The position numbers and the translations under genes are program-made. Below are positions 7,701-17,548 of a stretch of 64,000 nucleotides of DNA, one piece after another. Origin of the DNA: Dimorphilus gyrociliatus (Eukaryota; Animalia; Annelida); the NCBI GenBank assembly GCA_904063045.1, contig CAJFCJ010000006.1, forward strand, positions 1,527,601 to 1,591,600, in the 5' to 3' direction. Numbering within the stretch: the stretch's first letter is position 1; each line of letters starts with the position of its first letter. The notes under the pieces are model-generated. The model saw only the letters and a program-made list of their open reading frames with translations. It was not told the origin of the DNA and did no database searches.

Positions 7701-10700
7701 GGTGCATTTGTTTTGTAAAACGAAATTTGACTAGGAGACCGATGGACTGGGTCACCCCTACCATAGGTTGTGTTTTTGGTTCATAAATAGAATGATCATT
7801 ATCATAAGAACTTTAGAAGTAAACTACTCGAAATATAAGAAAACTTTTTTATACTCACTCTTTTCCAAATCTCTGACTGTCACCTTTGAAACATCAAACG
7901 ATGGTTCAACTCGAATTGCATATGGAGATCTAGGGATTTCTTGACCAGCGAAAAATACTCGACCAGTGTACGTTCCAGAACTTGTGGGTACGAAGTCAAT
8001 TCGGAATTTGTTAGGTCCGTCTTGATAGGTCTCTACAGGTACATCCAAGCCGCATTCGTCAGTTAAGGTCAAAGAAACGTCACCCGGTCCGGCTTCGTTG
8101 CAATCAACATTTAGATGAGTTGGAGTAAAAGTCATAACACTGCCCGGTTGTAAAGCAGGGCCATAGACTTTAACCTTATTTGGATCACTCGATTCTTCAA
8201 CCTACAAAAAGTATATACATCCATATATATACTGATATATACATATATAAATTTTACAAAAATATAAGAAAATACTCACGAGAACTCTATAAGGACTATT
8301 TGGTATTTGGACATTACCATAAGAAATAATAATAGTGTGCTTGACGGATCTTTCTGGCATATAACGACAGAAGAAGGTACCATCTTTGTTATCTCTAACG
8401 TGCAATTGTTTCACAGGTTTCAAATCAGCATCGATGCATGTAACATTTAACTTAGCTCTACCAGCTCGTCTAGTATTGACATTAAATTCAGCCCATTTAT
8501 TTACAGTGTTTCCAGTTTTCTCCAAGCCTGGTCCACTAGCTTCAACGCGACTGGGATCAAAATCTGGAGAGGGTGCAGTACTAAAGGGTACCATATAAGG
8601 TGACTTGGGAATATCTTCGTCATTGCATAATATGTGAACTGCATATTCTCCGAGTTGAGTTGGATAGTAAGTCACATCAGCTGAGCCATCGCGGTTATCA
8701 TCGCAAGATATTTTCGCTTGAGAAGGTCCCTCAATCTGAAATCCAAGTGAACCGGTTTCTCCGTTAGTTTCTACGGTGAATTTTGCTGGGAAATTAACAA
8801 CTCCAGCTTCGAGGCCAGGTCCGTAAGCTCTAATGCGCGATTCTTTGTAGGGTCCAACGTGGACACTAAAAGGACTCTTTGCGATATCTTGTCCACCATA
8901 CTGAATGATTACTTTATAGTCGCCAACATCTTTCGGTTCATAAAAGCATTCAAAGAGATTCGCATCCTTCTTTCGAATTTGGCACGGAACAGGACGTCCG
9001 CCTGGACCCAATACTTCGGCTTTCAGATCAGCAGATCCAGCTAGTTCAGTATGAACTTTAAAATCAGCAATATCACCAACTCTAACACCTTTAGGTTGAA
9101 GACCTCTTCCGGTTGCATAGACTTTCTTTGAATCGATGGCTGTTAATCGTAATTATCACTAGATTATAAAAATTTTTCACAATAGTAATAATACATTCAC
9201 TAATAATACATATTTGCTTTAAATACAAACTTCAACATTTATATAATATATTTACACAGCACTCAAACAGGATGTAGGTCTAATGATCGTTTCCTTCATT
9301 ATACATATCTTATTTTTTAAAGGCAATGATTAAATCACAAAATACTCCCATGTCAAAATGTACGTAATAATATCCATTTATAATTTTTCAATAAATTAGA
9401 TTTTCAATCTTTATTTTGCTTAGAAAGTAATACAAAAATTTCTTAAGGATGACACGAAAAGTTTAGCAATAGACTTTTTTTTTTTTTAAATAAAATCTCC
9501 CTTCTTTTAAAGACATTCTTCGATAGTGGCAATATTCTGAGATTTACTCTCAGTAAACAAAATATGTCTGCTTTTCCATTCATTAGTTCTCAAATTATTG
9601 CTTTTACGTCACCATTAAAACTTTACCGATCGTATTCAAAGAATATAGATCTATTATTATATTCAGGTATAGCCTTATTTTATAATAGAAGAGAGTTTTA
9701 TATCGTCCGATTGGAAGTTTATGATATATCAAAAAAGAAAAAAGAAACAAGTAAATCTTCTTTCACTTTGATATCGGAATGTAAAAAATTCAATTTCCAG
9801 TGAAAGTAATTTACTCTAAATCAATATTATCTGTTTAAATTATGACCTTTTCTGATATTTTGTAGAATTTTTCGCATTACATATAACATTTAAGAAAAAA
9901 AGAACGAGGGATAGAAAACACTGCATCATCACACTTATCACTCACGTTTCGGTACGTATGCGTACTGAACTGGAGGAGCACTCTGAGAAGGTGCTTGCTT
10001 CTGAGCTAAACGGAATTGATACATATTTTTAATGATATGATTATTCCAATATTAATCCAAAAACTGTCTATTCTCTTTTTAGTATTAATAGTCCTTAATT
10101 CAAAAATTCCAAACTGATTATTATTCGTATTTTCTTATTACCAAAATAAAAAGAAAAAAATTATTATTTTCCTATACTACTGAAGATTGCACGCAATGTC
10201 AATATTTGACCCTATATAAAGGCGCTGAAAAAGTAAATAACAAGGGCATGCAGTATTTTTGCAATCGGCTTACGTTTTATCGCCGGTTGTTCAGCGAAAG
10301 GAACGCCACCTTTCGGAGCTAGATGAAAGATTGTAAGGGATTTATTAGTTTTCTTTCTTGTAGAGTTCATAAAAAAAGGTTTTTTCCTTTATGAATTCAT
10401 ATTATAGAATATGAAATTATCATCAACTTTGTTTACAAATCTTAAACTTTTTTCCAAACAAATGGGGATAGCTTTATAAGAATTATGTTAGTAAACAAAG
10501 AAATTGCATAAAAAAGAACCGCAAACTTTGCAACTTGCATCTAATTTAAAATATGTAAAATTATTAAGTATCTATTCATAAAACTCTTATTAACTAAAGA
10601 AATAGTCAACTAATTAATTAATTTCCTATTAAAACAACCCTGTAATCAGCTATCCCCATTAAAATAATTTATCTCTATTTAGAATTAAATTTACTTGACA

Positions 10701-13700
10701 TTTATGGACTAAATCTGTTTTTAGAGTGGGTAAGTAGGACTTTTCACTTACGTGGTGCAAAGCAGGCAAGGGCTGCTTGAACTGGAATTTTTTTTGTAAT
10801 AAAATTTTAGTTAGGTATTTTTATTATGAACAGCCTAGCAGCTGCTGAAAATTGTACCTGGTGAACAAGAGGGTGCTTGTTCAGGTCCACTGGCTGTAAA
10901 ATCGAGTAGAATAATGAAAATTTTTTCTTTCAAATAGTTATTATAACACTTTGGTAACACAGCAAGAGGCTCGCAAAAATATTTTTTTTTGTTATAAATA
11001 GAGCTAAAATCAGTAAAACAAACGCTAATAAATTGGAATGAACCTGAAGGGAGGGGAAGTATAAAGATAGATTTTGCTTAGTTGGACAAGTATTGTTCCG
11101 TTTTAGTATTCTAAATTTGTAAATGAATTTCACTCTCAATATTATGTATCAGTTGGAGTTTGACTCAATTGTCAAAAGGATGCAATTTTTGGATAGGGAT
11201 TTTGTAAACCACACTGTAAATAAGAACCCACAACTACGTACATTTCACATCGAAGGGAGGTCCGCTTTCTGTGAATATTATTTAAAATATTAAACACGTA
11301 AGAAAATTCACCAATTTCGCGTTACTAAGGAAGCTAATCATCGGAATACTGAAATAAAAAACAATTTCACTTACCAGGACTAACGTTGACGGTGAAGGCA
11401 CTACCAGGAATATCTCTTCCAGCGAATTTTACAGTAACGTGATGTCTTCCAGGCACTTTAGCAGTGTATTGAACTAACCATGTTGTAGGACTTTCTTTCT
11501 TGACAAGAGGTCTGACAGTGTCATAGTTGTCATTAGGATCTTTAATTGCAACGTCGACAACGCCAACACCAGCATTATCCGTATCAACTTTAAAATAGGT
11601 TCCTCTGTTTGCAATATTTCCATTCGGTTCAATACCTGGTCCCATTGCAGAGCATCTGTAAATCATAGAAATGCATGAATACCGTGTATAGTATATATAA
11701 TCACTGAATTTACGAAAATTACCTTGAGGCATCACCAGGTCTAGGATCAACACCTACTTCGAATGGACTCTTTGGAATTTCGGTTTGATTACCGCCATTC
11801 TTGGGTCCATATTTTATTTCAACTCTATAAGTTCCTTGCATCTTGGGAGTATAAGTACAAGAGAAAGTTTTATTTCTATTAGCTTCTCCATCAGAGATTC
11901 CAGCACCAGATCTTCTCCTATCGTCCTCATCACGGAAATTTTTCTTTATCTCACAGTGTTCTACTTGCCCGGACGGACTCAAAACGACCACCGAGGGAAT
12001 ACCATCGCCAGCGCTAAAAATATCAATCGTAAAACGTGCTGGAGCTCCAACACAGTTTCCGGTAGGTTCCAAACCTTAGCAAAAAAAGCAGATAGTTTGA
12101 AAAAGACTTGTTTATAAATTTGTTTAAAGCATACCGGGTCCGTAAGCTCGAACTTTTTTGGGGTTCAATCTTGGTTTCAAAGGAGCACCAGGTTGTAGTT
12201 TTGCAGATGGAAACTGAGACAAGTAGGTCATCATAGAAAGTTCGTCCTTTTTGGGGTTAATTAATTCTTCAGGCCTGATCAGTTGAGGAACTCCCAACCA
12301 TTGTTCAGCCTTGTCCATAGCTTCCGTCGCATTTTCCTTTGGCCTTACTGGAGTCCAATCGGGCCAGTCTGGACACAAGCCAGGCGCTATATTATCTACC
12401 AAAGCACCGATGGTTATACCATCATTCCAATCCGTAGTGAAATTCGTAATAGGACGTTCTGGTATTTTGTTTTGTACCCAAGCCAATAGTTTTTGTTTGG
12501 GCGTTTGCTCTTTCTTTCCATCCGGCTGAAAAGATTCACATAGAATATAATATAAAATATAGGTATCTTATAAATAGAGGAAATTATAATGTAATTTAAA
12601 TTTGATCACTTTCTAATTGAAAAAATATTATTTAATTTGTCAGAAGAAAAAGCAAGTTTTAAAAAGCATCTTTAACTTAAAAATGCAATTTCCTATTAGA
12701 ATTAAATTACGTGTTTAAACAGTGTTTACCAATATAAGCGATAAAAGCACTATGAAAATGAAAGAAAAAGTAATTCATTAAATATGGCTTGAAGAAATTT
12801 TCTCATATGCAAATATATATATGTATATATAAATTTATATATGTGATATATTAAAGAAATACACTATATGAAGCATTTATATACATAGAAAGAATAGTTA
12901 GAAAGGAATTTTTTACACGAAGAGCATTAGGAAATTATCAAAGGAGATATACTAATTCAGTTACCAATTTAATTAGATAAAAAGAAAAGCATTAGATATC
13001 TTTTATATTTAACTTTAATAAAAGAATCATTTGTCTTTCATTTGTATTTGAAATAAAAAACCTATTACTAAATCTAGACTTACTTTTTAAAGGATTAGTA
13101 CGAGCTAAACGATAAAATTAGATTGCTAAATAAAAGAAAGCTTCCAAATAATTTTGCTGATAAAATATTTAAAATAAAAGTAGGGATTAAAGTAGCCTTT
13201 TTTCTAATGTTTAGTTCCAGCTTTTTAAAAAATTACTTATTTATTAATTAATTACAATATATCTCCTTTGGACATGCCCTTCTGCTGATTTTTAGCAAAG
13301 AAACTTATATTTTTATGTATTATTATACTTACTTTTTCCGATTTGACGGGATCCTTTAAAGAATATTACTCTTTGTAAATGTTTAATTTAAACGTTTGTT
13401 GTTATATAGTATAAAATTGCTTACAATAATTTACTTAAACTTAAAAAATTAGTCGGAAATAATTGATAAATAATCAATTATTTTTAATTCACTTAGGTCT
13501 GGATTATACCCTGATGATTGTAATTTTTTTTTATTATTAGCCTGAATATTGCTAACAAATAAGTATAATTAACTAATATATCCTAAATTGTATGGAATGA
13601 TCGATTACAAGTATCTTTTACGAAAACACTTACTGCATCCGAATCGTCCTCCCAAGTTGGCATTGAGATGCTGTAATGCAAAATCAATGTCCATATTAAG

Positions 13701-16700
13701 CCCAAAATTAATTTCAATTTATGATCGACGATGTCAGTACTATCTGTTGAAGAGAAAAGTTTTTGTTGAGAATATTGTAAAATGTGGCGCCATCTTAAGT
13801 ATAACAAATATGCTTTTTTTTTTATCAAATCTCTTACATCTCCTACTGTTAAGTTTTGTTAAGTAAATATATCTAAAATTGACACTCTAAGGATAAAATT
13901 TTTTATATTATAATAATAAAGCATTGTTTTTACTGTTTATACAGCTATTTGTAAACAAAGTATGTCTAGTCTAGACTATTATCAATTAGCATATCCTAAA
14001 TGATATATTGTATCTTTTCTCCAAATATATATCCCATTGGTAACGAACTATTATATATATATATATATATAGATCATTCTATTCTTAATTTTCGATGTAA
14101 TGATTTCCTATATAATTATTGGTAAAGTCGGTATAATTACAATTATCCATGACCTTGCAAAGCTATGGATGTCGGAATAGGTTTAGTTAATAGGGAAAAA
14201 GAAATTAGACCTTTTAAACTTGATACAATCTAACAAAGTATATTCTAACAAATTAAATTTATCAATACTAGTTTAGACAAACTTTGAATAGGGATTGTTT
14301 TAATTTTTCATGTTCGTTTTTCTTTTCATTCTTTGCAGTTTTGAGAGCAGAAGTATTTTTTTTTTATATATATAGATTTGTTTAGTAAACACAAGATATT
14401 GATGGAAAATTAGTAGTTTTAAGCATAAAATCGTTATCAACAGTTAAAAAAATCGAATAACCGTGACTATAAAAAGAAAAAAGAAAACTCTTTTAGCTTT
14501 ACATAATACAATTTTTACGTTATTTAGTGTAAAATACGTACAAAAAATAGTGTAACAGTTGTCGTATTCAAGTAATTTTTTCCAGGGGATGTATGATTGA
14601 ATTCGTTATTGTATTAATGATTTGCAACCTGTTCTAGTTCTTTTGTATTAATGAAAAGTTCACAAAAGAACTTGGGTTTATTATGCAAGGCCAACAAACG
14701 TTTGATACTGATTAATAGGTTCCTTTTTGTAGGTTAAAAATAGAGAATGCAAAATTATTCAAATAATTACTGGTAACTAAAATTAAGATAAAGAGAGAGC
14801 GAGAGAGAAATTACCTGAGGGAATTTGAGAAAAAAAAATAATTAATTAAAAATCTCAGATTTCAATTAAAAAAAAGGGCTTAACTAAATAGGATTTTATT
14901 TTACTAGTAAAAAGATGATATATGTTTTACTTTTTTTAAAGTTTTAAGTTTTTCAACAAACTATTTTCAACATCAAATGTTTCGTATATACTGTATTTTC
15001 TTAGGAAATGATATACTAAAAATTTATTCTATTTACTTAACGAATAAACAAGAAAAAAAGACAGTACATATATAAATCTGATTAAATTAGTCGCTCTTTT
15101 TCTTATCTCTCTTAATTTGTCACTTGTTATCTAGTCAAGTAAAAATTGAATTTATAGCTTTTATATGATACTAAAGAAAAAATTGGTAGGTGGTACAAAA
15201 TTGATTGATAATTATTGCCAGAGAGCGCCACTAGCAATCGATAGAAAATTTAGGATGTTTAAAGGATTAACATTTAAAAAGCATAGCGTAAAATATATAT
15301 ATATGATTGCATTGGCGGAAATTTTACTATTTTGATTATGTGATTTATAGACCTATACAAATCCAATAAAAACAACTAGTGTTGAGAATCAAACATGAAG
15401 AAGAGCTAATTAAGCCTACTCAAAGCAACCACAAAGTTAAATAAATATACAGCATTCTCGACTGTATAAAGCGACAACGATAAGTCAGTAAGGAGCAATA
15501 AAACACACGCTATTTAACTAGCGGCTCGATCACAGACACAATCAACTCTTTGTCATTCAGAGTTTGACTAAAAAACACCAACAAATAAATACAATCCTAC
15601 ACAAATCGTGCCTAGACTTAATTATCAAAAGATTAACACCCAAGCTGCATAAATTGGCCTATATTTATCGCTACATCCGTTCCTTTCCCGTTCAGTTTGA
15701 TTGAAAAAAAAAAAAACTTTTTATCTAAAACGTTTTTCTCTTCGTAGATAAAATTTTCCGTACAAGTACGAATGAACTAAATTTTTTTCCGAATAATTTA
15801 CATCTCTATTCAAGATTAACTCAACACAAAAAAAGACTAATAATAATCAATTATATTTGTTTGAAGAGAGCTTAACGCATAGTCAAGTTAATTAGATGAG
15901 TATTATATACCTTTTTTAACACTGTCGTACTTAAAATAATATTGACCTTGTTCATTTTGTTGCCTTTTTAATTATTATTTTTTTTTTTAAAATACCTATT
16001 CAAAACGAAACATTACTAAAACTCCTTAAGAAACAAGTCCATTCTATATGTTAATCTTATTAATAAGAAAAAGGCTTTTTCAAATCCTAACAAAAACTAA
16101 CATAGATAAGTGTATTGAAAGTAAGGTAATAGTTTTAATTTGTTCAATTCAATTATTTTTTCTCCCTTAGAAAAATGTATCTATTGGAATATACAGTATA
16201 CTAAATATACTAAAGTAAATCTTTTCTTTATATATATATATATATATAATAATTTTCCAAATCCTATATGTTCCTATATTAAATTAAATTCCTTTTTTAT
16301 CAGAATAATTTATACTATTTTTTTGCTATTGCTTAATCTAATAGTTCCTGTTGTAAAAATTTATATACTATATATATATATATATTGTTCTAATAGAAAA
16401 AGATATCGATGGGTGGTAGATGTAGGCGTATAAAACGTATGTATTAATACAATTAAATAATTAACTTAAATATATAGCCATTTTCAATCATAAATATATC
16501 CTTGTCTCCCATTCTCTTCCTACATTCTTTCCATTTTTCTCTTACAAAAAGAGGCCGTTCATATTTTATACTAAGAAAGAATAAGAAAAAACGCGGGAAA
16601 AGCTTTAAAAAAAAAATTATGCAGTGTTGCGAGTTTAGCTCCTATATTTATTCTTTATATTATATATACCGGTTTTTTTTTATAAATTGTTTGATTTCTC

Positions 16701-17548
16701 TATGATTCAAACGAATCGATTAAAAAGAAAAACATTCTAAAAATATGATTAAGAAGAAAAGAATCGGTAAAACTTATAGATGAGTGACTACTTCCTTTAT
16801 CTCCCCCACTTTTTTTTTATCCTATTAATTAGTTTTCTTTCTTTTCTTTTTTTTTTGTATACCATATATACTAATCAAACATTGAGCACTATTAGAACAT
16901 TCTTAAAACGTGAAAACTTGTTAAATGACCTGTTCTATTAAAGGAAATTACAAAATATGTTTAAAATGAAAAATGTTGTTGCAATGTTATCGATTTTTTT
17001 CAATTCTTATGGTCACCGAGATTTATATGCCCGAAGAAATTGATAGTCTAACTCTTTACGTATCGCACACGAAACAATACACTCGAAAATTTATCAATTG
17101 CTGGTATGAAATATTAATAAACTGGTCACGCATCGACTAAATTATCGATTTTCACATCTGTTCAGTATATGAGGTTTAAAAACCACGCTCAACTCACAAC
17201 TTAAAATTTGTAACATGAATTGAGCGATAATAGCGTACTTTTTTAAAACTACATACCAATATTTACAATTCTTATTCCTTCATCCTCCTCCAAGAATTTT
17301 AAGCACATTGTAACATTCTCCAACTTTTGAGTTCTAAAATTCGGTCTACGATTATACTTGCTAAATTTCTTTCCGGATAGCACTTCAACAAGGGCGATTA
17401 AACGAAGACCGTCGGCAAAATCGTATTCCAAATCAACGACATTCTTATTGACGGTTTTCAAGTGTTCGTTCGCCCAGCGAGTGAACGTGTTCTTCTGTAT
17501 AATCTTCCACTGGGCATCCTCAGCCAACTCACGTTCAGTGGCCGGCAT
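1770..17548 (-). CDS. FLN: Filamin (CH1-CH2 actin-binding domain + 22 filamin/Ig repeats), about 2406 aa core isoform
   Basis: Exons 17257-17548, 13634-13743, 12135-12525, 11723-12074, 11375-11655, 8280-9139, 7859-8201, 7267-7670, 6834-7044, 6270-6417, 5700-6204, 4910-5641, 1770-4361; all GT-AG, sum 7221 nt, in frame. N-terminus [25 protein letters not shown] is the filamin CH1 signature; repeated GPGL...EGPSKA.I.C.DN.DG...GSPF units; terminal dimerisation repeat. Confidence 0.97.
4538..4594 (-). CDS. Candidate filamin hinge-1 cassette exon (57 nt, [19 protein letters not shown])
   Basis: ttttatatag|GTAATG...TTAAAC|GTGTGT; phase 0-0 matching the flanking exons; stop-free. Confidence 0.65.
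4835..4861 (-). CDS. Candidate filamin hinge-1 microexon (27 nt, FVENTTASK)
   Basis: ccttcatag|TTT...AAA|GTATAA; phase 0-0; upstream intron 48 nt, similar to other short introns here. Confidence 0.45.
9946..10005 (-). CDS. Candidate filamin cassette exon E (60 nt, [20 protein letters not shown])
   Basis: ccgtttag|CT CAG...AAA C|GTGAGT; phase 1-1; GC-richer than the flanking intron. Confidence 0.8.
10274..10318 (-). CDS. Candidate filamin microexon D (45 nt, [15 protein letters not shown])
   Basis: ctttcatctag|CT CCG...AAA C|GTAAGC; phase 1-1; TGCATG about 22 nt downstream (10247-10252). Confidence 0.8.
10752..10781 (-). CDS. Candidate filamin microexon C (30 nt, [10 protein letters not shown])
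   Basis: ttccag|TT CAA...CCA C|GTAAGT; CTAAC branch point about 30 nt upstream; phase 1-1. Confidence 0.7.
10858..10893 (-). CDS. Candidate filamin microexon B (36 nt, [12 protein letters not shown])
   Basis: gattttacag|CC AGT...CCA G|GTACAA; phase 1-1. Confidence 0.7.
11242..11268 (-). CDS. Candidate filamin microexon A (27 nt, xSGPPFDVK)
   Basis: tattcacag|AA AGC...AAA T|GTACGT; phase 1-1. Confidence 0.65.
13333..13353 (-). CDS. Candidate filamin CH1-CH2 linker microexon (21 nt, DPVKSEK)
   Basis: tattctttaaag|GAT CCC GTC AAA TCG GAA AAA|GTAAGT; phase 0-0 as are the flanking exons. Confidence 0.7.
14052..14071. repeat. (TA)n microsatellite
   Basis: Direct read. Confidence 0.9.

Follow-up and report, generated by a model that had tools for sequence, protein, structure and literature searches.

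Assembled RNA confirms that a filamin gene of the annelid Dimorphilus gyrociliatus contains five real, alternatively used, frame-preserving coding exons, all within one intron between Ig repeats 2 and 3. An alternatively spliced filamin hinge or insert is already a known kind of feature; the version built from five microexons is new. We consider it likely that the five (ME1 to ME5) form one coordinated cassette, which would encode an optional disordered linker with short binding motifs and be governed by conserved intronic RNA elements. All positions refer to the window, the 64,000-nucleotide stretch of genomic DNA that was analysed.

Host gene and intron

The gene is identified as a filamin by N-terminal calponin-homology (CH) domains followed by tandem Ig repeats (Pfam). 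Matches to PF00630 (Filamin/ABP280 repeat) lie at 11723-12072, 11376-11654 and 8280-9137, the last comprising three repeats. The array intron lies between filamin repeat 2 and repeats 3-5, with CH2 and repeat 1 upstream, so Pfam supports the placement proposed in the earlier note. Searches for full-length homologues and among 50%-identity cluster representatives returned no annotated filamin protein of D. gyrociliatus. The exons and the intron are as follows.

17249-17548: CH1 start exon, read from the sequence
12133-12498: CH domain exon (Pfam E 2e-18)
11375-11655, minus strand: constitutive exon, Ig repeat 2 (Pfam Filamin E 5e-18; borders from RNA contigs)
9140-11374, minus strand: array-hosting intron, phase 1, 2,235 nt (skip junction 11375>9139 in both RNA runs)
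8278-9139, minus strand: constitutive exon, Ig repeats 3-5 (Pfam Filamin E 1e-67; RNA contigs)

The Ig2 exon ends on a G, the first base of a split codon, and is followed by the donor gtaagt. The Ig3-5 exon opens with CC and finishes that codon, giving G/CC (Ala) in the short form and C/CC (Pro) after ME5. The median intron length in this species is 66 bp (PMC7854359); the host intron is about 34 times longer, and the adjoining introns measure 60 and 67 nt.

Five phase-compatible units

The units, listed in transcript order, are each preceded by YAG and followed by GT(A/G), and each is a multiple of 3, in phase 1-1 and stop-free in phase 1.

11242-11268, minus strand: ME1, 27 nt, peptide SGPPFDVK, junction codon GAA = E (junctions 11375>11268 and 11242>10893)
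10858-10893, minus strand: ME2, 36 nt (RNA junctions)
10752-10781, minus strand: ME3, 30 nt, peptide QAALACFAP (RNA junctions)
10274-10318, minus strand: ME4, 45 nt (RNA junctions)
9946-10005, minus strand: ME5, 60 nt (junctions 10274>10005 and 9946>9139)

Their GC content is 0.48-0.57, compared with 0.29 for the 2,235-nt intron. The islands, with their borders, phase, frame and GC enrichment, had been claimed from the sequence; rechecking bears them out, RNA junctions match each border to the base, and the peptides and their P/A/Q/S-rich character read as stated then. Where a microexon is an exon of 51 nt or less, ME1 (27 nt), ME3 (30 nt), ME2 (36 nt) and ME4 (45 nt) qualify and ME5 (60 nt) falls just outside; strict use of the term stops at 27 nt or less. 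The donors of ME1 (GTACGT) and ME2 (GTACAA) are weak.

Strict criteria (phase-compatible, stop-free, AG..GT) yield 15 candidates in the intron and about 9 in shuffled sequences. Requiring a GC content of at least 0.48 leaves nine, every one nested inside one of the units, where shuffles give 0.14 (maximum 3). Comparing the units with one another revealed no repeat family; an internal duplication was considered for ME2 and ME5, which share 11/12 nt, and rejected as not significant (p = 0.01, uncorrected over 10 comparisons).

Two observed forms of a probable single cassette

The RNA data consist of assembled transcript contigs from two whole-sample runs (X1 and X2) of two independent studies. 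Seven junctions, the skip junction and all six of the inclusion chain, occur in both. A look across 9139-11375 thus recovers the full chain besides the direct 11375>9139 junction, and the frame is kept in both forms, which makes the array an alternative cassette. In run X1, a single unbranched 258-nt contig contains all five units consecutively (30+27+36+30+45+60+30 nt). Inclusion relative to skipping is roughly 5.6 vs 7.2 in run X1 and about 90 vs 256 in run X2, these being contig depths only.

The earlier note had proposed that the microexons are selected independently of one another, so that tissues could make as many as 32 different linkers. Any subset would indeed be translatable, since the units are all in phase 1-1 and no ordered pair of them (all pairs were checked) creates a stop codon at its junction. 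There is also precedent for variation of this kind: in scallop, 5 aa inside the insert at the same site distinguish isoform X2 from isoform X9, and oyster filamins mix and match small cassettes, at other sites. The RNA does not follow this pattern. Both runs contain only two paths, five units or zero, with no junction of a partial combination, although contigs can conceal rare or minor partial forms. In run X2 the ME5>Ig3 junction is deeper (133) than the other chain junctions (84-90), as independent use of ME5 might produce, but four chain junctions share one common depth and the excess may be mere short-contig noise. At the contig level, 32-way use is unsupported, and we regard it as improbable. 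Because only all-five and none paths are seen, the array behaves as a single coordinated cassette of 198 nt (66 aa).

Beyond the general frequency of noisy splicing, nothing suggests that the long form is splicing noise or an unproductive isoform directed to NMD, without protein function. It is in frame, stop-free and abundant in two studies, and its substitution pattern (below) is that of protein-level purifying selection, so this explanation is very improbable indeed.

Conservation in a diverged relative

We compared the array with a 17-kb orthologous locus (L001) of a diverged relative, two species in all. The flanking constitutive exons provide a neutral benchmark of 54% identity at 4-fold sites. 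All five units are retained with identical lengths and AG/GT borders. ME1 has 4 synonymous and 0 non-synonymous changes and keeps its weak donor; ME2 has 2 and 0, and ME3 3 and 0. ME4 is unchanged (45/45 nt identical, including 8/8 four-fold sites), and in ME5 8 changes are synonymous and 2 replace a residue conservatively (A>T, S>T). Over whole codons, 2/61 are changed non-synonymously and 17/61 synonymously; the corresponding counts in the flanking constitutive exons are 17/616 and 244/616. In total, 64/66 insert residues are identical while synonymous sites are near saturation, a constraint as tight as that on the Ig domains. The codon-level check suggested earlier therefore comes out positive, and the insert units are under protein-level purifying selection.

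A probable optional linker behind the actin-binding domain

The insert adds 198 nt, a net 66 residues, which are 24% Pro and 15% Ala and rich in Ser and Gln. Our comparisons of the D. gyrociliatus insert were made per exon. AlphaFold2 was applied to Ig2-insert-Ig3 of P0295, an annelid-like homologue described below; the Ig domains are predicted with pLDDT >95 and the insert at 50-62, without secondary structure. Given the P/A/Q/S-rich segment and the predicted disorder of its equivalent in the closest insert-bearing homologue, a splice-controlled extra linker or hinge behind the actin-binding domain is a fair reading. The tunable hinge proposed earlier stands as far as the optional exons and the disorder predicted for the homologue go, and loses its combinatorial tuning.

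In this model, the transcript either joins Ig2 straight to Ig3 or runs from ME1 to ME5 in order. The added segment, most likely intrinsically disordered, would lengthen and loosen the rod right behind the actin-binding domain. A purely passive spacer, giving length and flexibility only with its sequence unimportant, would fit the low-complexity composition, the predicted disorder of the homologous insert and the wide variation in sequence and length (17-84 aa) of same-site inserts in other phyla. Passive spacers usually drift, however, whereas this one is as constrained as Ig domains in L001 and the ME4 motif is retained in a distant annelid-like filamin, making a passive role distinctly unlikely. 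Since its sequence is held so tightly, the optional linker probably also carries short binding motifs, for which the GGVPFA core of ME4 is a candidate.

Conserved intronic elements

Several conserved or paired elements accompany the units.

10862-10918: conserved block (95% vs L001) that includes about 25 nt upstream of the ME2 acceptor
10648-10660, minus strand: 5' arm of a GC-rich stem in the ME3-ME4 intron, AAUGGGGAUAGCU, part of a 13-bp perfect inverted repeat
10461-10473, minus strand: 3' arm of the same stem, AGCUAUCCCCAUU, with 174 nt looped out
10146-10315, minus strand: ultraconserved block that takes in ME4 and continues for about 128 nt into the following intron, with 99% identity to L001
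10247-10252, minus strand: UGCAUG (RBFOX-type element), +22 to +27 after the ME4 donor, identical in L001
9209-9267, minus strand: 59-nt non-coding block of the intron, conserved at 93% and situated about 70-130 nt before the Ig3 acceptor

The choice between the two forms is probably set by such elements, possibly through RBFOX-type, cell-type-specific control. Foremost among the candidates is the 170-nt ultraconserved block, which belongs to the longest near-identical run of the 17-kb orthologous locus. The UGCAUG claimed earlier downstream of ME4 is confirmed, and it is the only copy in the intron; its count alone does not reach significance, since about 0.3 copies are expected in 2.2 kb by our own estimate, and a conserved (U)GCAUG in the proximal downstream intron is the sequence feature of RBFOX-activated exons. 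The conserved stem, which would shorten the ME3-ME4 intron, may assist; both of its boxes are retained (10 bp) in L001 though the surrounding intron is unalignable (two species). The 25 nt preceding each of the five acceptors contain no TGC, and a scan for the eMIC/SRRM4 motif matches non-exon sites only.

Instead of controlling splicing, the block might act as an enhancer in the DNA, encode a small RNA that has escaped recognition, or form the end of a product in which the intron is retained. ATAC-seq peaks have been reported in unusually large D. gyrociliatus introns (PMC7854359). An unspliced contig spans the ME4-ME5 intron in run X2 (depth 13 vs 84 for the spliced path), and in our own reading of the sequence, a frame continued past the ME4 donor meets a stop after 20 codons. 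Against these roles, conservation extends across the exon, every silent site included, and borders immediately on the donor, a pattern typical of RNA-level splicing constraint. An Rfam scan of both intron strands gave chance-level matches only, with no family for the block, and folding z-scores against shuffles were -0.7 and -0.3 for the two strands, so nothing here points to a structured RNA or a miRNA/snoRNA host. As for a coding tail, conservation extends about 65 nt beyond the read-through stop and the block has no silent changes, unlike coding sequence. Taken together, a role other than splicing control appears unlikely. A-to-I editing was also rejected as the cause of the conservation, as the RNA contigs have no T>C differences there, and exact and degenerate DNA patterns for the block found no match in metagenome contigs.

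Inserts at the same junction in other filamins

The earlier note knew of no such array at this position. The position itself is not unique: inserts occur at the exact Ig2/Ig3 junction in predicted isoforms of scallop, amphioxus and teleost filamins, including FLNC, and in annelid-like transcripts, where they measure 38-74 aa (P0295, P0296 and the P0249/P0291-P0294 group). In tuna FLNC, a single 117-nt cassette exon sits in the same split-codon intron, with the codon G/CC for Ala as in the worm. No publications on inserts at this junction were found in the literature searched.

In a tree of Ig3-5, P0295 and P0296 are the nearest neighbours of the D. gyrociliatus filamin, with support of 96/88 for the P0295 grouping. 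P0295 comes from a Siedleckia TSA and probably derives from the host worm. The ME4 motif recurs in it (PRGGVPFAVDEAPIK), a peptide match reached by 0/500 shuffles (p<0.002); searched against the worm intron, the motif gives a tblastn E of 0.005. The two inserts share the ME4 core P[KR]GGVPFA..IKP and an EGGP or ESGP start. The peptide comparison with relatives proposed earlier thus succeeds for ME4; for ME1-3 and ME5, resemblance to other inserts is at most suggestive of homology. Collinear best matches of the five peptides in homologous inserts were sought and failed the test because the peptides are short and Pro-rich; only ME4 against P0295 is significant. A search with P0295:440-550 for insert-bearing fragments returned Ig-flank matches only. 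By eye, and without statistical support, a P-[VL]-[QH]-[IVY]-x-P motif can be seen in worm ME5, P0294 and teleost inserts.

A broader and much more tentative proposal, which we consider rather improbable, is that bilaterian filamins possess an overlooked third hinge or docking site of ancient origin at the Ig2/Ig3 junction. Annelids, molluscs, amphioxus and teleost FLNC would all encode a Pro-rich optional segment in the same phase-1 G/CC intron. Dinophilids would have split the segment into five microexons switched jointly by an ultraconserved RBFOX-type module; the resulting filamin would be specific to a cell type, perhaps muscle, and would differ in crosslink geometry or have a specific partner.

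Comparison with known systems

Accounts of filamin mechanics and signalling usually invoke a pair of hinges, one following repeat 15 and one following repeat 23, together with the repeat-20 insert of FLNC. A strongly conserved linker that can be included or omitted immediately behind the actin-binding domain would alter crosslink reach and angle and could add a partner site. Optional exons in the same intron of fish FLNC and of other phyla are apparently undescribed in the literature searched. Five jointly switched microexons across a 2.2-kb intron would offer a compact, testable case of microexon coordination, in a genome whose machinery is tuned to introns of about 66 nt and which yet keeps a 170-nt ultraconserved element beside the array.

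Neural microexons of the eMIC/SRRM4 type resemble the worm units in being very short, frame-preserving, conserved alternative exons, here in a cytoskeletal gene, but they have a UGC close upstream of the acceptor, which the worm units lack. Schistosome MEG-type arrays are likewise runs of symmetrical microexons (in the worm five, phase 1-1, multiples of 3); they use varied microexon subsets, whereas the worm contigs are all-in or all-out, though rare forms may be hidden. In the titin PEVK region, successive small exons that share one phase encode an unstructured stretch rich in Pro, and their inclusion sets the linker length. The worm array shares the same-phase small exons and the Pro-rich product, but has five exons rather than dozens, no repeat family among its units and no differential use in the contigs, and its composition is not that of a PEVK-like spring (P 16, E 3, V 5 and K 5 of 67 residues, just 43%).

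The annelid-like inserts share the junction, and P0295 the ME4 core; they are known from transcripts alone, and their regions matching ME1-3 and ME5 have diverged. The teleost FLNC cassette (predicted isoforms, for example in Thunnus, Salmo, Silurus and Gadus) has an identical intron position and phase. Like the worm insert, the teleost FLNC, scallop and amphioxus inserts are Pro-rich and come in isoforms with and without them; the tuna FLNC cassette differs in being one 117-nt exon instead of five, and the similarity of its sequence is not significant, so that the shared site could reflect either common descent or exonisation that happened more than once. Vertebrate filamin hinges are positioned after repeats 15 and 23 (PMC7216277), and the worm insert, after repeat 2, corresponds to neither. 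Hinge 1 of FLNB and FLNC, an alternatively spliced exon between repeats 15 and 16, is lost during myogenesis (PMC7216277, PMC2199218). As with the worm array, what vertebrate hinge 1 places between two Ig repeats is encoded by exon sequence and is either included in full or omitted; its flexibility is a property that the worm segment probably shares. Hinge 1 differs in following repeat 15 and using one exon, where the worm has five microexons after repeat 2 without sequence similarity to it.

A filamin intron with five small exons

The gene in the window is a canonical filamin according to Pfam, and the placement of its Ig repeats puts the array-bearing intron exactly between Ig2 and Ig3.

Features of the filamin locus (ME1-ME5, the five small exons; borders checked by script on the sequence)
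17249-17548, minus strand: first CH exon (sequence reading)
12133-12498, minus strand: exon with CH2 (Pfam)
11723-12072, minus strand: filamin repeat 1 (Pfam)
11376-11654, minus strand: filamin repeat 2 (Pfam)
9140-11374, minus strand: array-bearing intron, 2,235 nt, GC 0.29
11242-11268, minus strand: ME1, 27 nt
10858-10893, minus strand: ME2, 36 nt
10752-10781, minus strand: ME3, 30 nt
10274-10318, minus strand: ME4, 45 nt
9946-10005, minus strand: ME5, 60 nt
8280-9137, minus strand: filamin repeats 3-5 (Pfam)

The two introns adjoining this one measure 60 and 67 nt in RNA contigs. Introns of Dimorphilus gyrociliatus have a median length of 66 bp, and its splicing machinery is adapted to such short ones (PMC7854359); the short neighbouring introns and the annelid-side placement of the window in our tree (see below) fit this species.

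The earlier note had proposed five frame-preserving units here, and its coordinates proved exact in both a minus-strand reading and the scripted border check. Each unit is preceded by YAG and followed by GT(A/G), has a length divisible by three, and contains no stop in phase 1, with a GC content of 0.48-0.57 (vs 0.29 for the whole intron). Phase-compatible, stop-free AG..GT intervals number 15 in the intron, vs about 9 in shuffles; nine of these are GC-rich, all nested within ME1-ME5, vs 0.14 in shuffles. The proposal that any subset keeps the frame also holds at the junctions, as none of the ordered unit pairs (all checked) creates a stop codon. Inclusion of all five adds a net 66 residues, and the 67 codons of the included form comprise 16 Pro, 10 Ala, 7 Ser and 7 Gln.

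The array is spliced mainly as one cassette

We aligned assembled contigs from two sequencing runs, X1 (a 2024 coral metatranscriptome) and X2 (2017), to positions 8200-12500. X2 gave high-depth spliced contigs identical in sequence to the window. X1 differed at eight single bases, all transitions, at exonic positions within 8553-12349, and its worm therefore comes from another population; since X1 is a coral metatranscriptome, a worm of a slightly different population was present in a coral-associated sample.

The junctions looked for across the array are present in both runs: the skip junction (11375>9139), and all six junctions of the chain 11375>ME1>ME2>ME3>ME4>ME5>9139, each at the predicted base. 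A single 258-nt X1 contig (30+27+36+30+45+60+30 nt) carries ME1-ME5 in series between the constitutive exons. ME1-ME5 are real exons, and the observation of five units is confirmed and strengthened by the RNA and comparative data.

No junctions other than the skip and the six chain junctions were reported in the X1 and X2 contigs, which drop rare variants. Splicing is predominantly all or none, with minor partial forms possible for the same reason. The combinatorial use that had been suggested is thus not supported by these contigs; the five exons are used together, as a single coordinated cassette. Contigs for inclusion and for skipping had depths of 5.6 and 7.2 in X1, and of about 90 and 256 in X2. 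Contig depth is a poor measure, but these values suggest that roughly a quarter to less than half of the transcripts include the array. The five-microexon architecture and its coordinated use are new here.

The ME4-ME5 intron (10006-10273) also occurs unspliced in X2, at a depth of 13 compared with 84 for contigs in which it is removed. If translation continues past the ME4 donor, a stop follows after 20 codons, which end in a hydrophobic tail. The unspliced form may reflect intron detention or a truncated product.

Conservation of the insert and its intron

A 17.9-kb genomic contig from a separate sequencing run (L001), reached through a protein fragment, P0126, carries the filamin orthologue of a related species. 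P0126 is a prokaryote-style gene call (L001:10001-10444) running from the Ig5 exon into the next intron, and illustrates that exon-wise calls of eukaryotic contigs occur in the protein collection.

Between the window and L001, the flanking constitutive exons show 244 synonymous and 17 non-synonymous codon differences among 616 codons, and only 54% of their 4-fold sites agree, which places neutral sites near saturation. The intron for the most part aligns weakly (0.54 identity, gaps included). L001 nevertheless has all five exons, each with its length unchanged and its AG/GT borders kept. Nine whole codons are altered in ME1-ME3, all silently; ME4 has no changes; ME5 has eight silent changes and two conservative replacements. 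Overall, 2 of 61 whole codons are non-synonymous, a level equal to that of the Ig domains. On this comparison, the insert is under protein-level purifying selection, and such tight sequence conservation argues that it is more than a passive spacer.

ME4 and the roughly 128 nt of intron that follow it (10315-10146) are 99% identical to L001 and belong to the longest near-identical run of the whole 17-kb locus. The TGCATG noted earlier downstream of ME4 is present as UGCAUG within this block, 22-27 nt past the donor; it is the sole copy in the intron and is conserved in L001. The block matched no Rfam family and folded no better than shuffles on either strand, and the UGC element typical of eMIC/SRRM4-dependent microexons is absent at all five acceptors. 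Further upstream, the ME3-ME4 intron contains a 13-bp perfect GC-rich stem (10660-10648 pairing with 10473-10461) that encloses 174 nt; L001 keeps both boxes as a 10-bp stem, within sequence that cannot otherwise be aligned. Inclusion is probably controlled from the ME4 block, with its RBFOX-type element, and the stem may contribute. The ultraconserved RNA-level element adjoining ME4 is new here.

Other non-coding blocks are also conserved. Two are located ahead of the Ig3 acceptor, in the final portion of the array-bearing intron (9209-9267, 93% over 59 nt, including UGUAAAUA; and 9587-9616, 87% over 30 nt). In the first long filamin intron, a 154-nt block (15509-15661, minus strand) differs from L001 at only four positions, with weaker conserved stretches on either side (15838-16148 and 14371-14902). 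Possible roles for the 154-nt block are those of enhancer, alternative promoter or UTR exon.

Inserts at the same position in other animals

Most filamins have only a split codon between Ig2 and Ig3. Inserts at this position occur in the following sequences.

Inserts at Ig2/Ig3
Annelid-like transcripts P0295 and P0296: 74 and 38 aa
Annelid-like transcripts P0249 and P0291-P0294: 57-69 aa
Nemertean-like transcript P0300: 17 aa
Scallop isoforms: 33 and 38 aa
Amphioxus FLNC: 84 aa
Many teleost FLNC isoforms: 19-54 aa (insert absent from sister isoforms)

P0295 was found in the transcriptome of the gregarine Siedleckia nematoides, a parasite of a polychaete, and probably derives from the host. In a tree built on the Ig3-5 exon, the window and L001 cluster with P0295 and P0296 (support 96/88). 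P0295 contains PRGGVPFAVDEAPIK, aligned to the worm ME4 peptide with a score reached by none of 500 shuffles (p<0.002); this match is the best in-frame tblastn hit of the whole intron (E 0.005). ME1-ME3 resemble EGGP..D and C[ST]P.[EQ]AAL of other inserts at the same positions, resemblances that are individually not significant. A structural model of Ig2-insert-Ig3 as it naturally occurs in P0295, based on an alignment of 33 sequences, gave pLDDT above 95 for both Ig domains; the insert had pLDDT 50-62 and no secondary structure, indicating a disordered linker. The worm's insert presumably functions in both hinge and docking roles.

The 2-kb Ig2/Ig3 intron of the annelid Owenia fusiformis contains an unannotated candidate 78-nt phase 1-1 cassette (L003:33253-33330), with acceptor ...attcag, donor gtgagt and GC 0.59 vs 0.35 for its intron. 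The candidate is similar to the C-terminal portion of the P0291 insert (E 0.006). In the FLNC-like gene of tuna (Thunnus thynnus), one 117-nt phase 1-1 exon (L004:7901-8017), rather than five as in the worm, encodes the Pro-rich, 39-aa insert, yet the two introns split the same codon (G|CC, Ala).

Our literature search found no paper describing an Ig2/Ig3 insert, including those of teleost FLNC. The earlier view that no such array had been described here stands for the literature searched, but other animals do carry optional inserts at this position. Linking these scattered, undescribed inserts to one conserved intron is new here. Ig2/Ig3 is a recurrent site of optional filamin inserts and not a one-off, possibly of ancient origin. 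Already described as optional in filamins are hinge 1, which follows repeat 15, and the repeat-20 insert of FLNC (PMC7216277). Oyster filamin-A-like isoforms (P0003, P0152-P0164) mix and match small cassettes away from Ig2/Ig3, at four sites: within Ig2, behind Ig5, and around residues 1353 and 1770; spiralian filamins therefore have combinatorial small-exon use, elsewhere in the protein.
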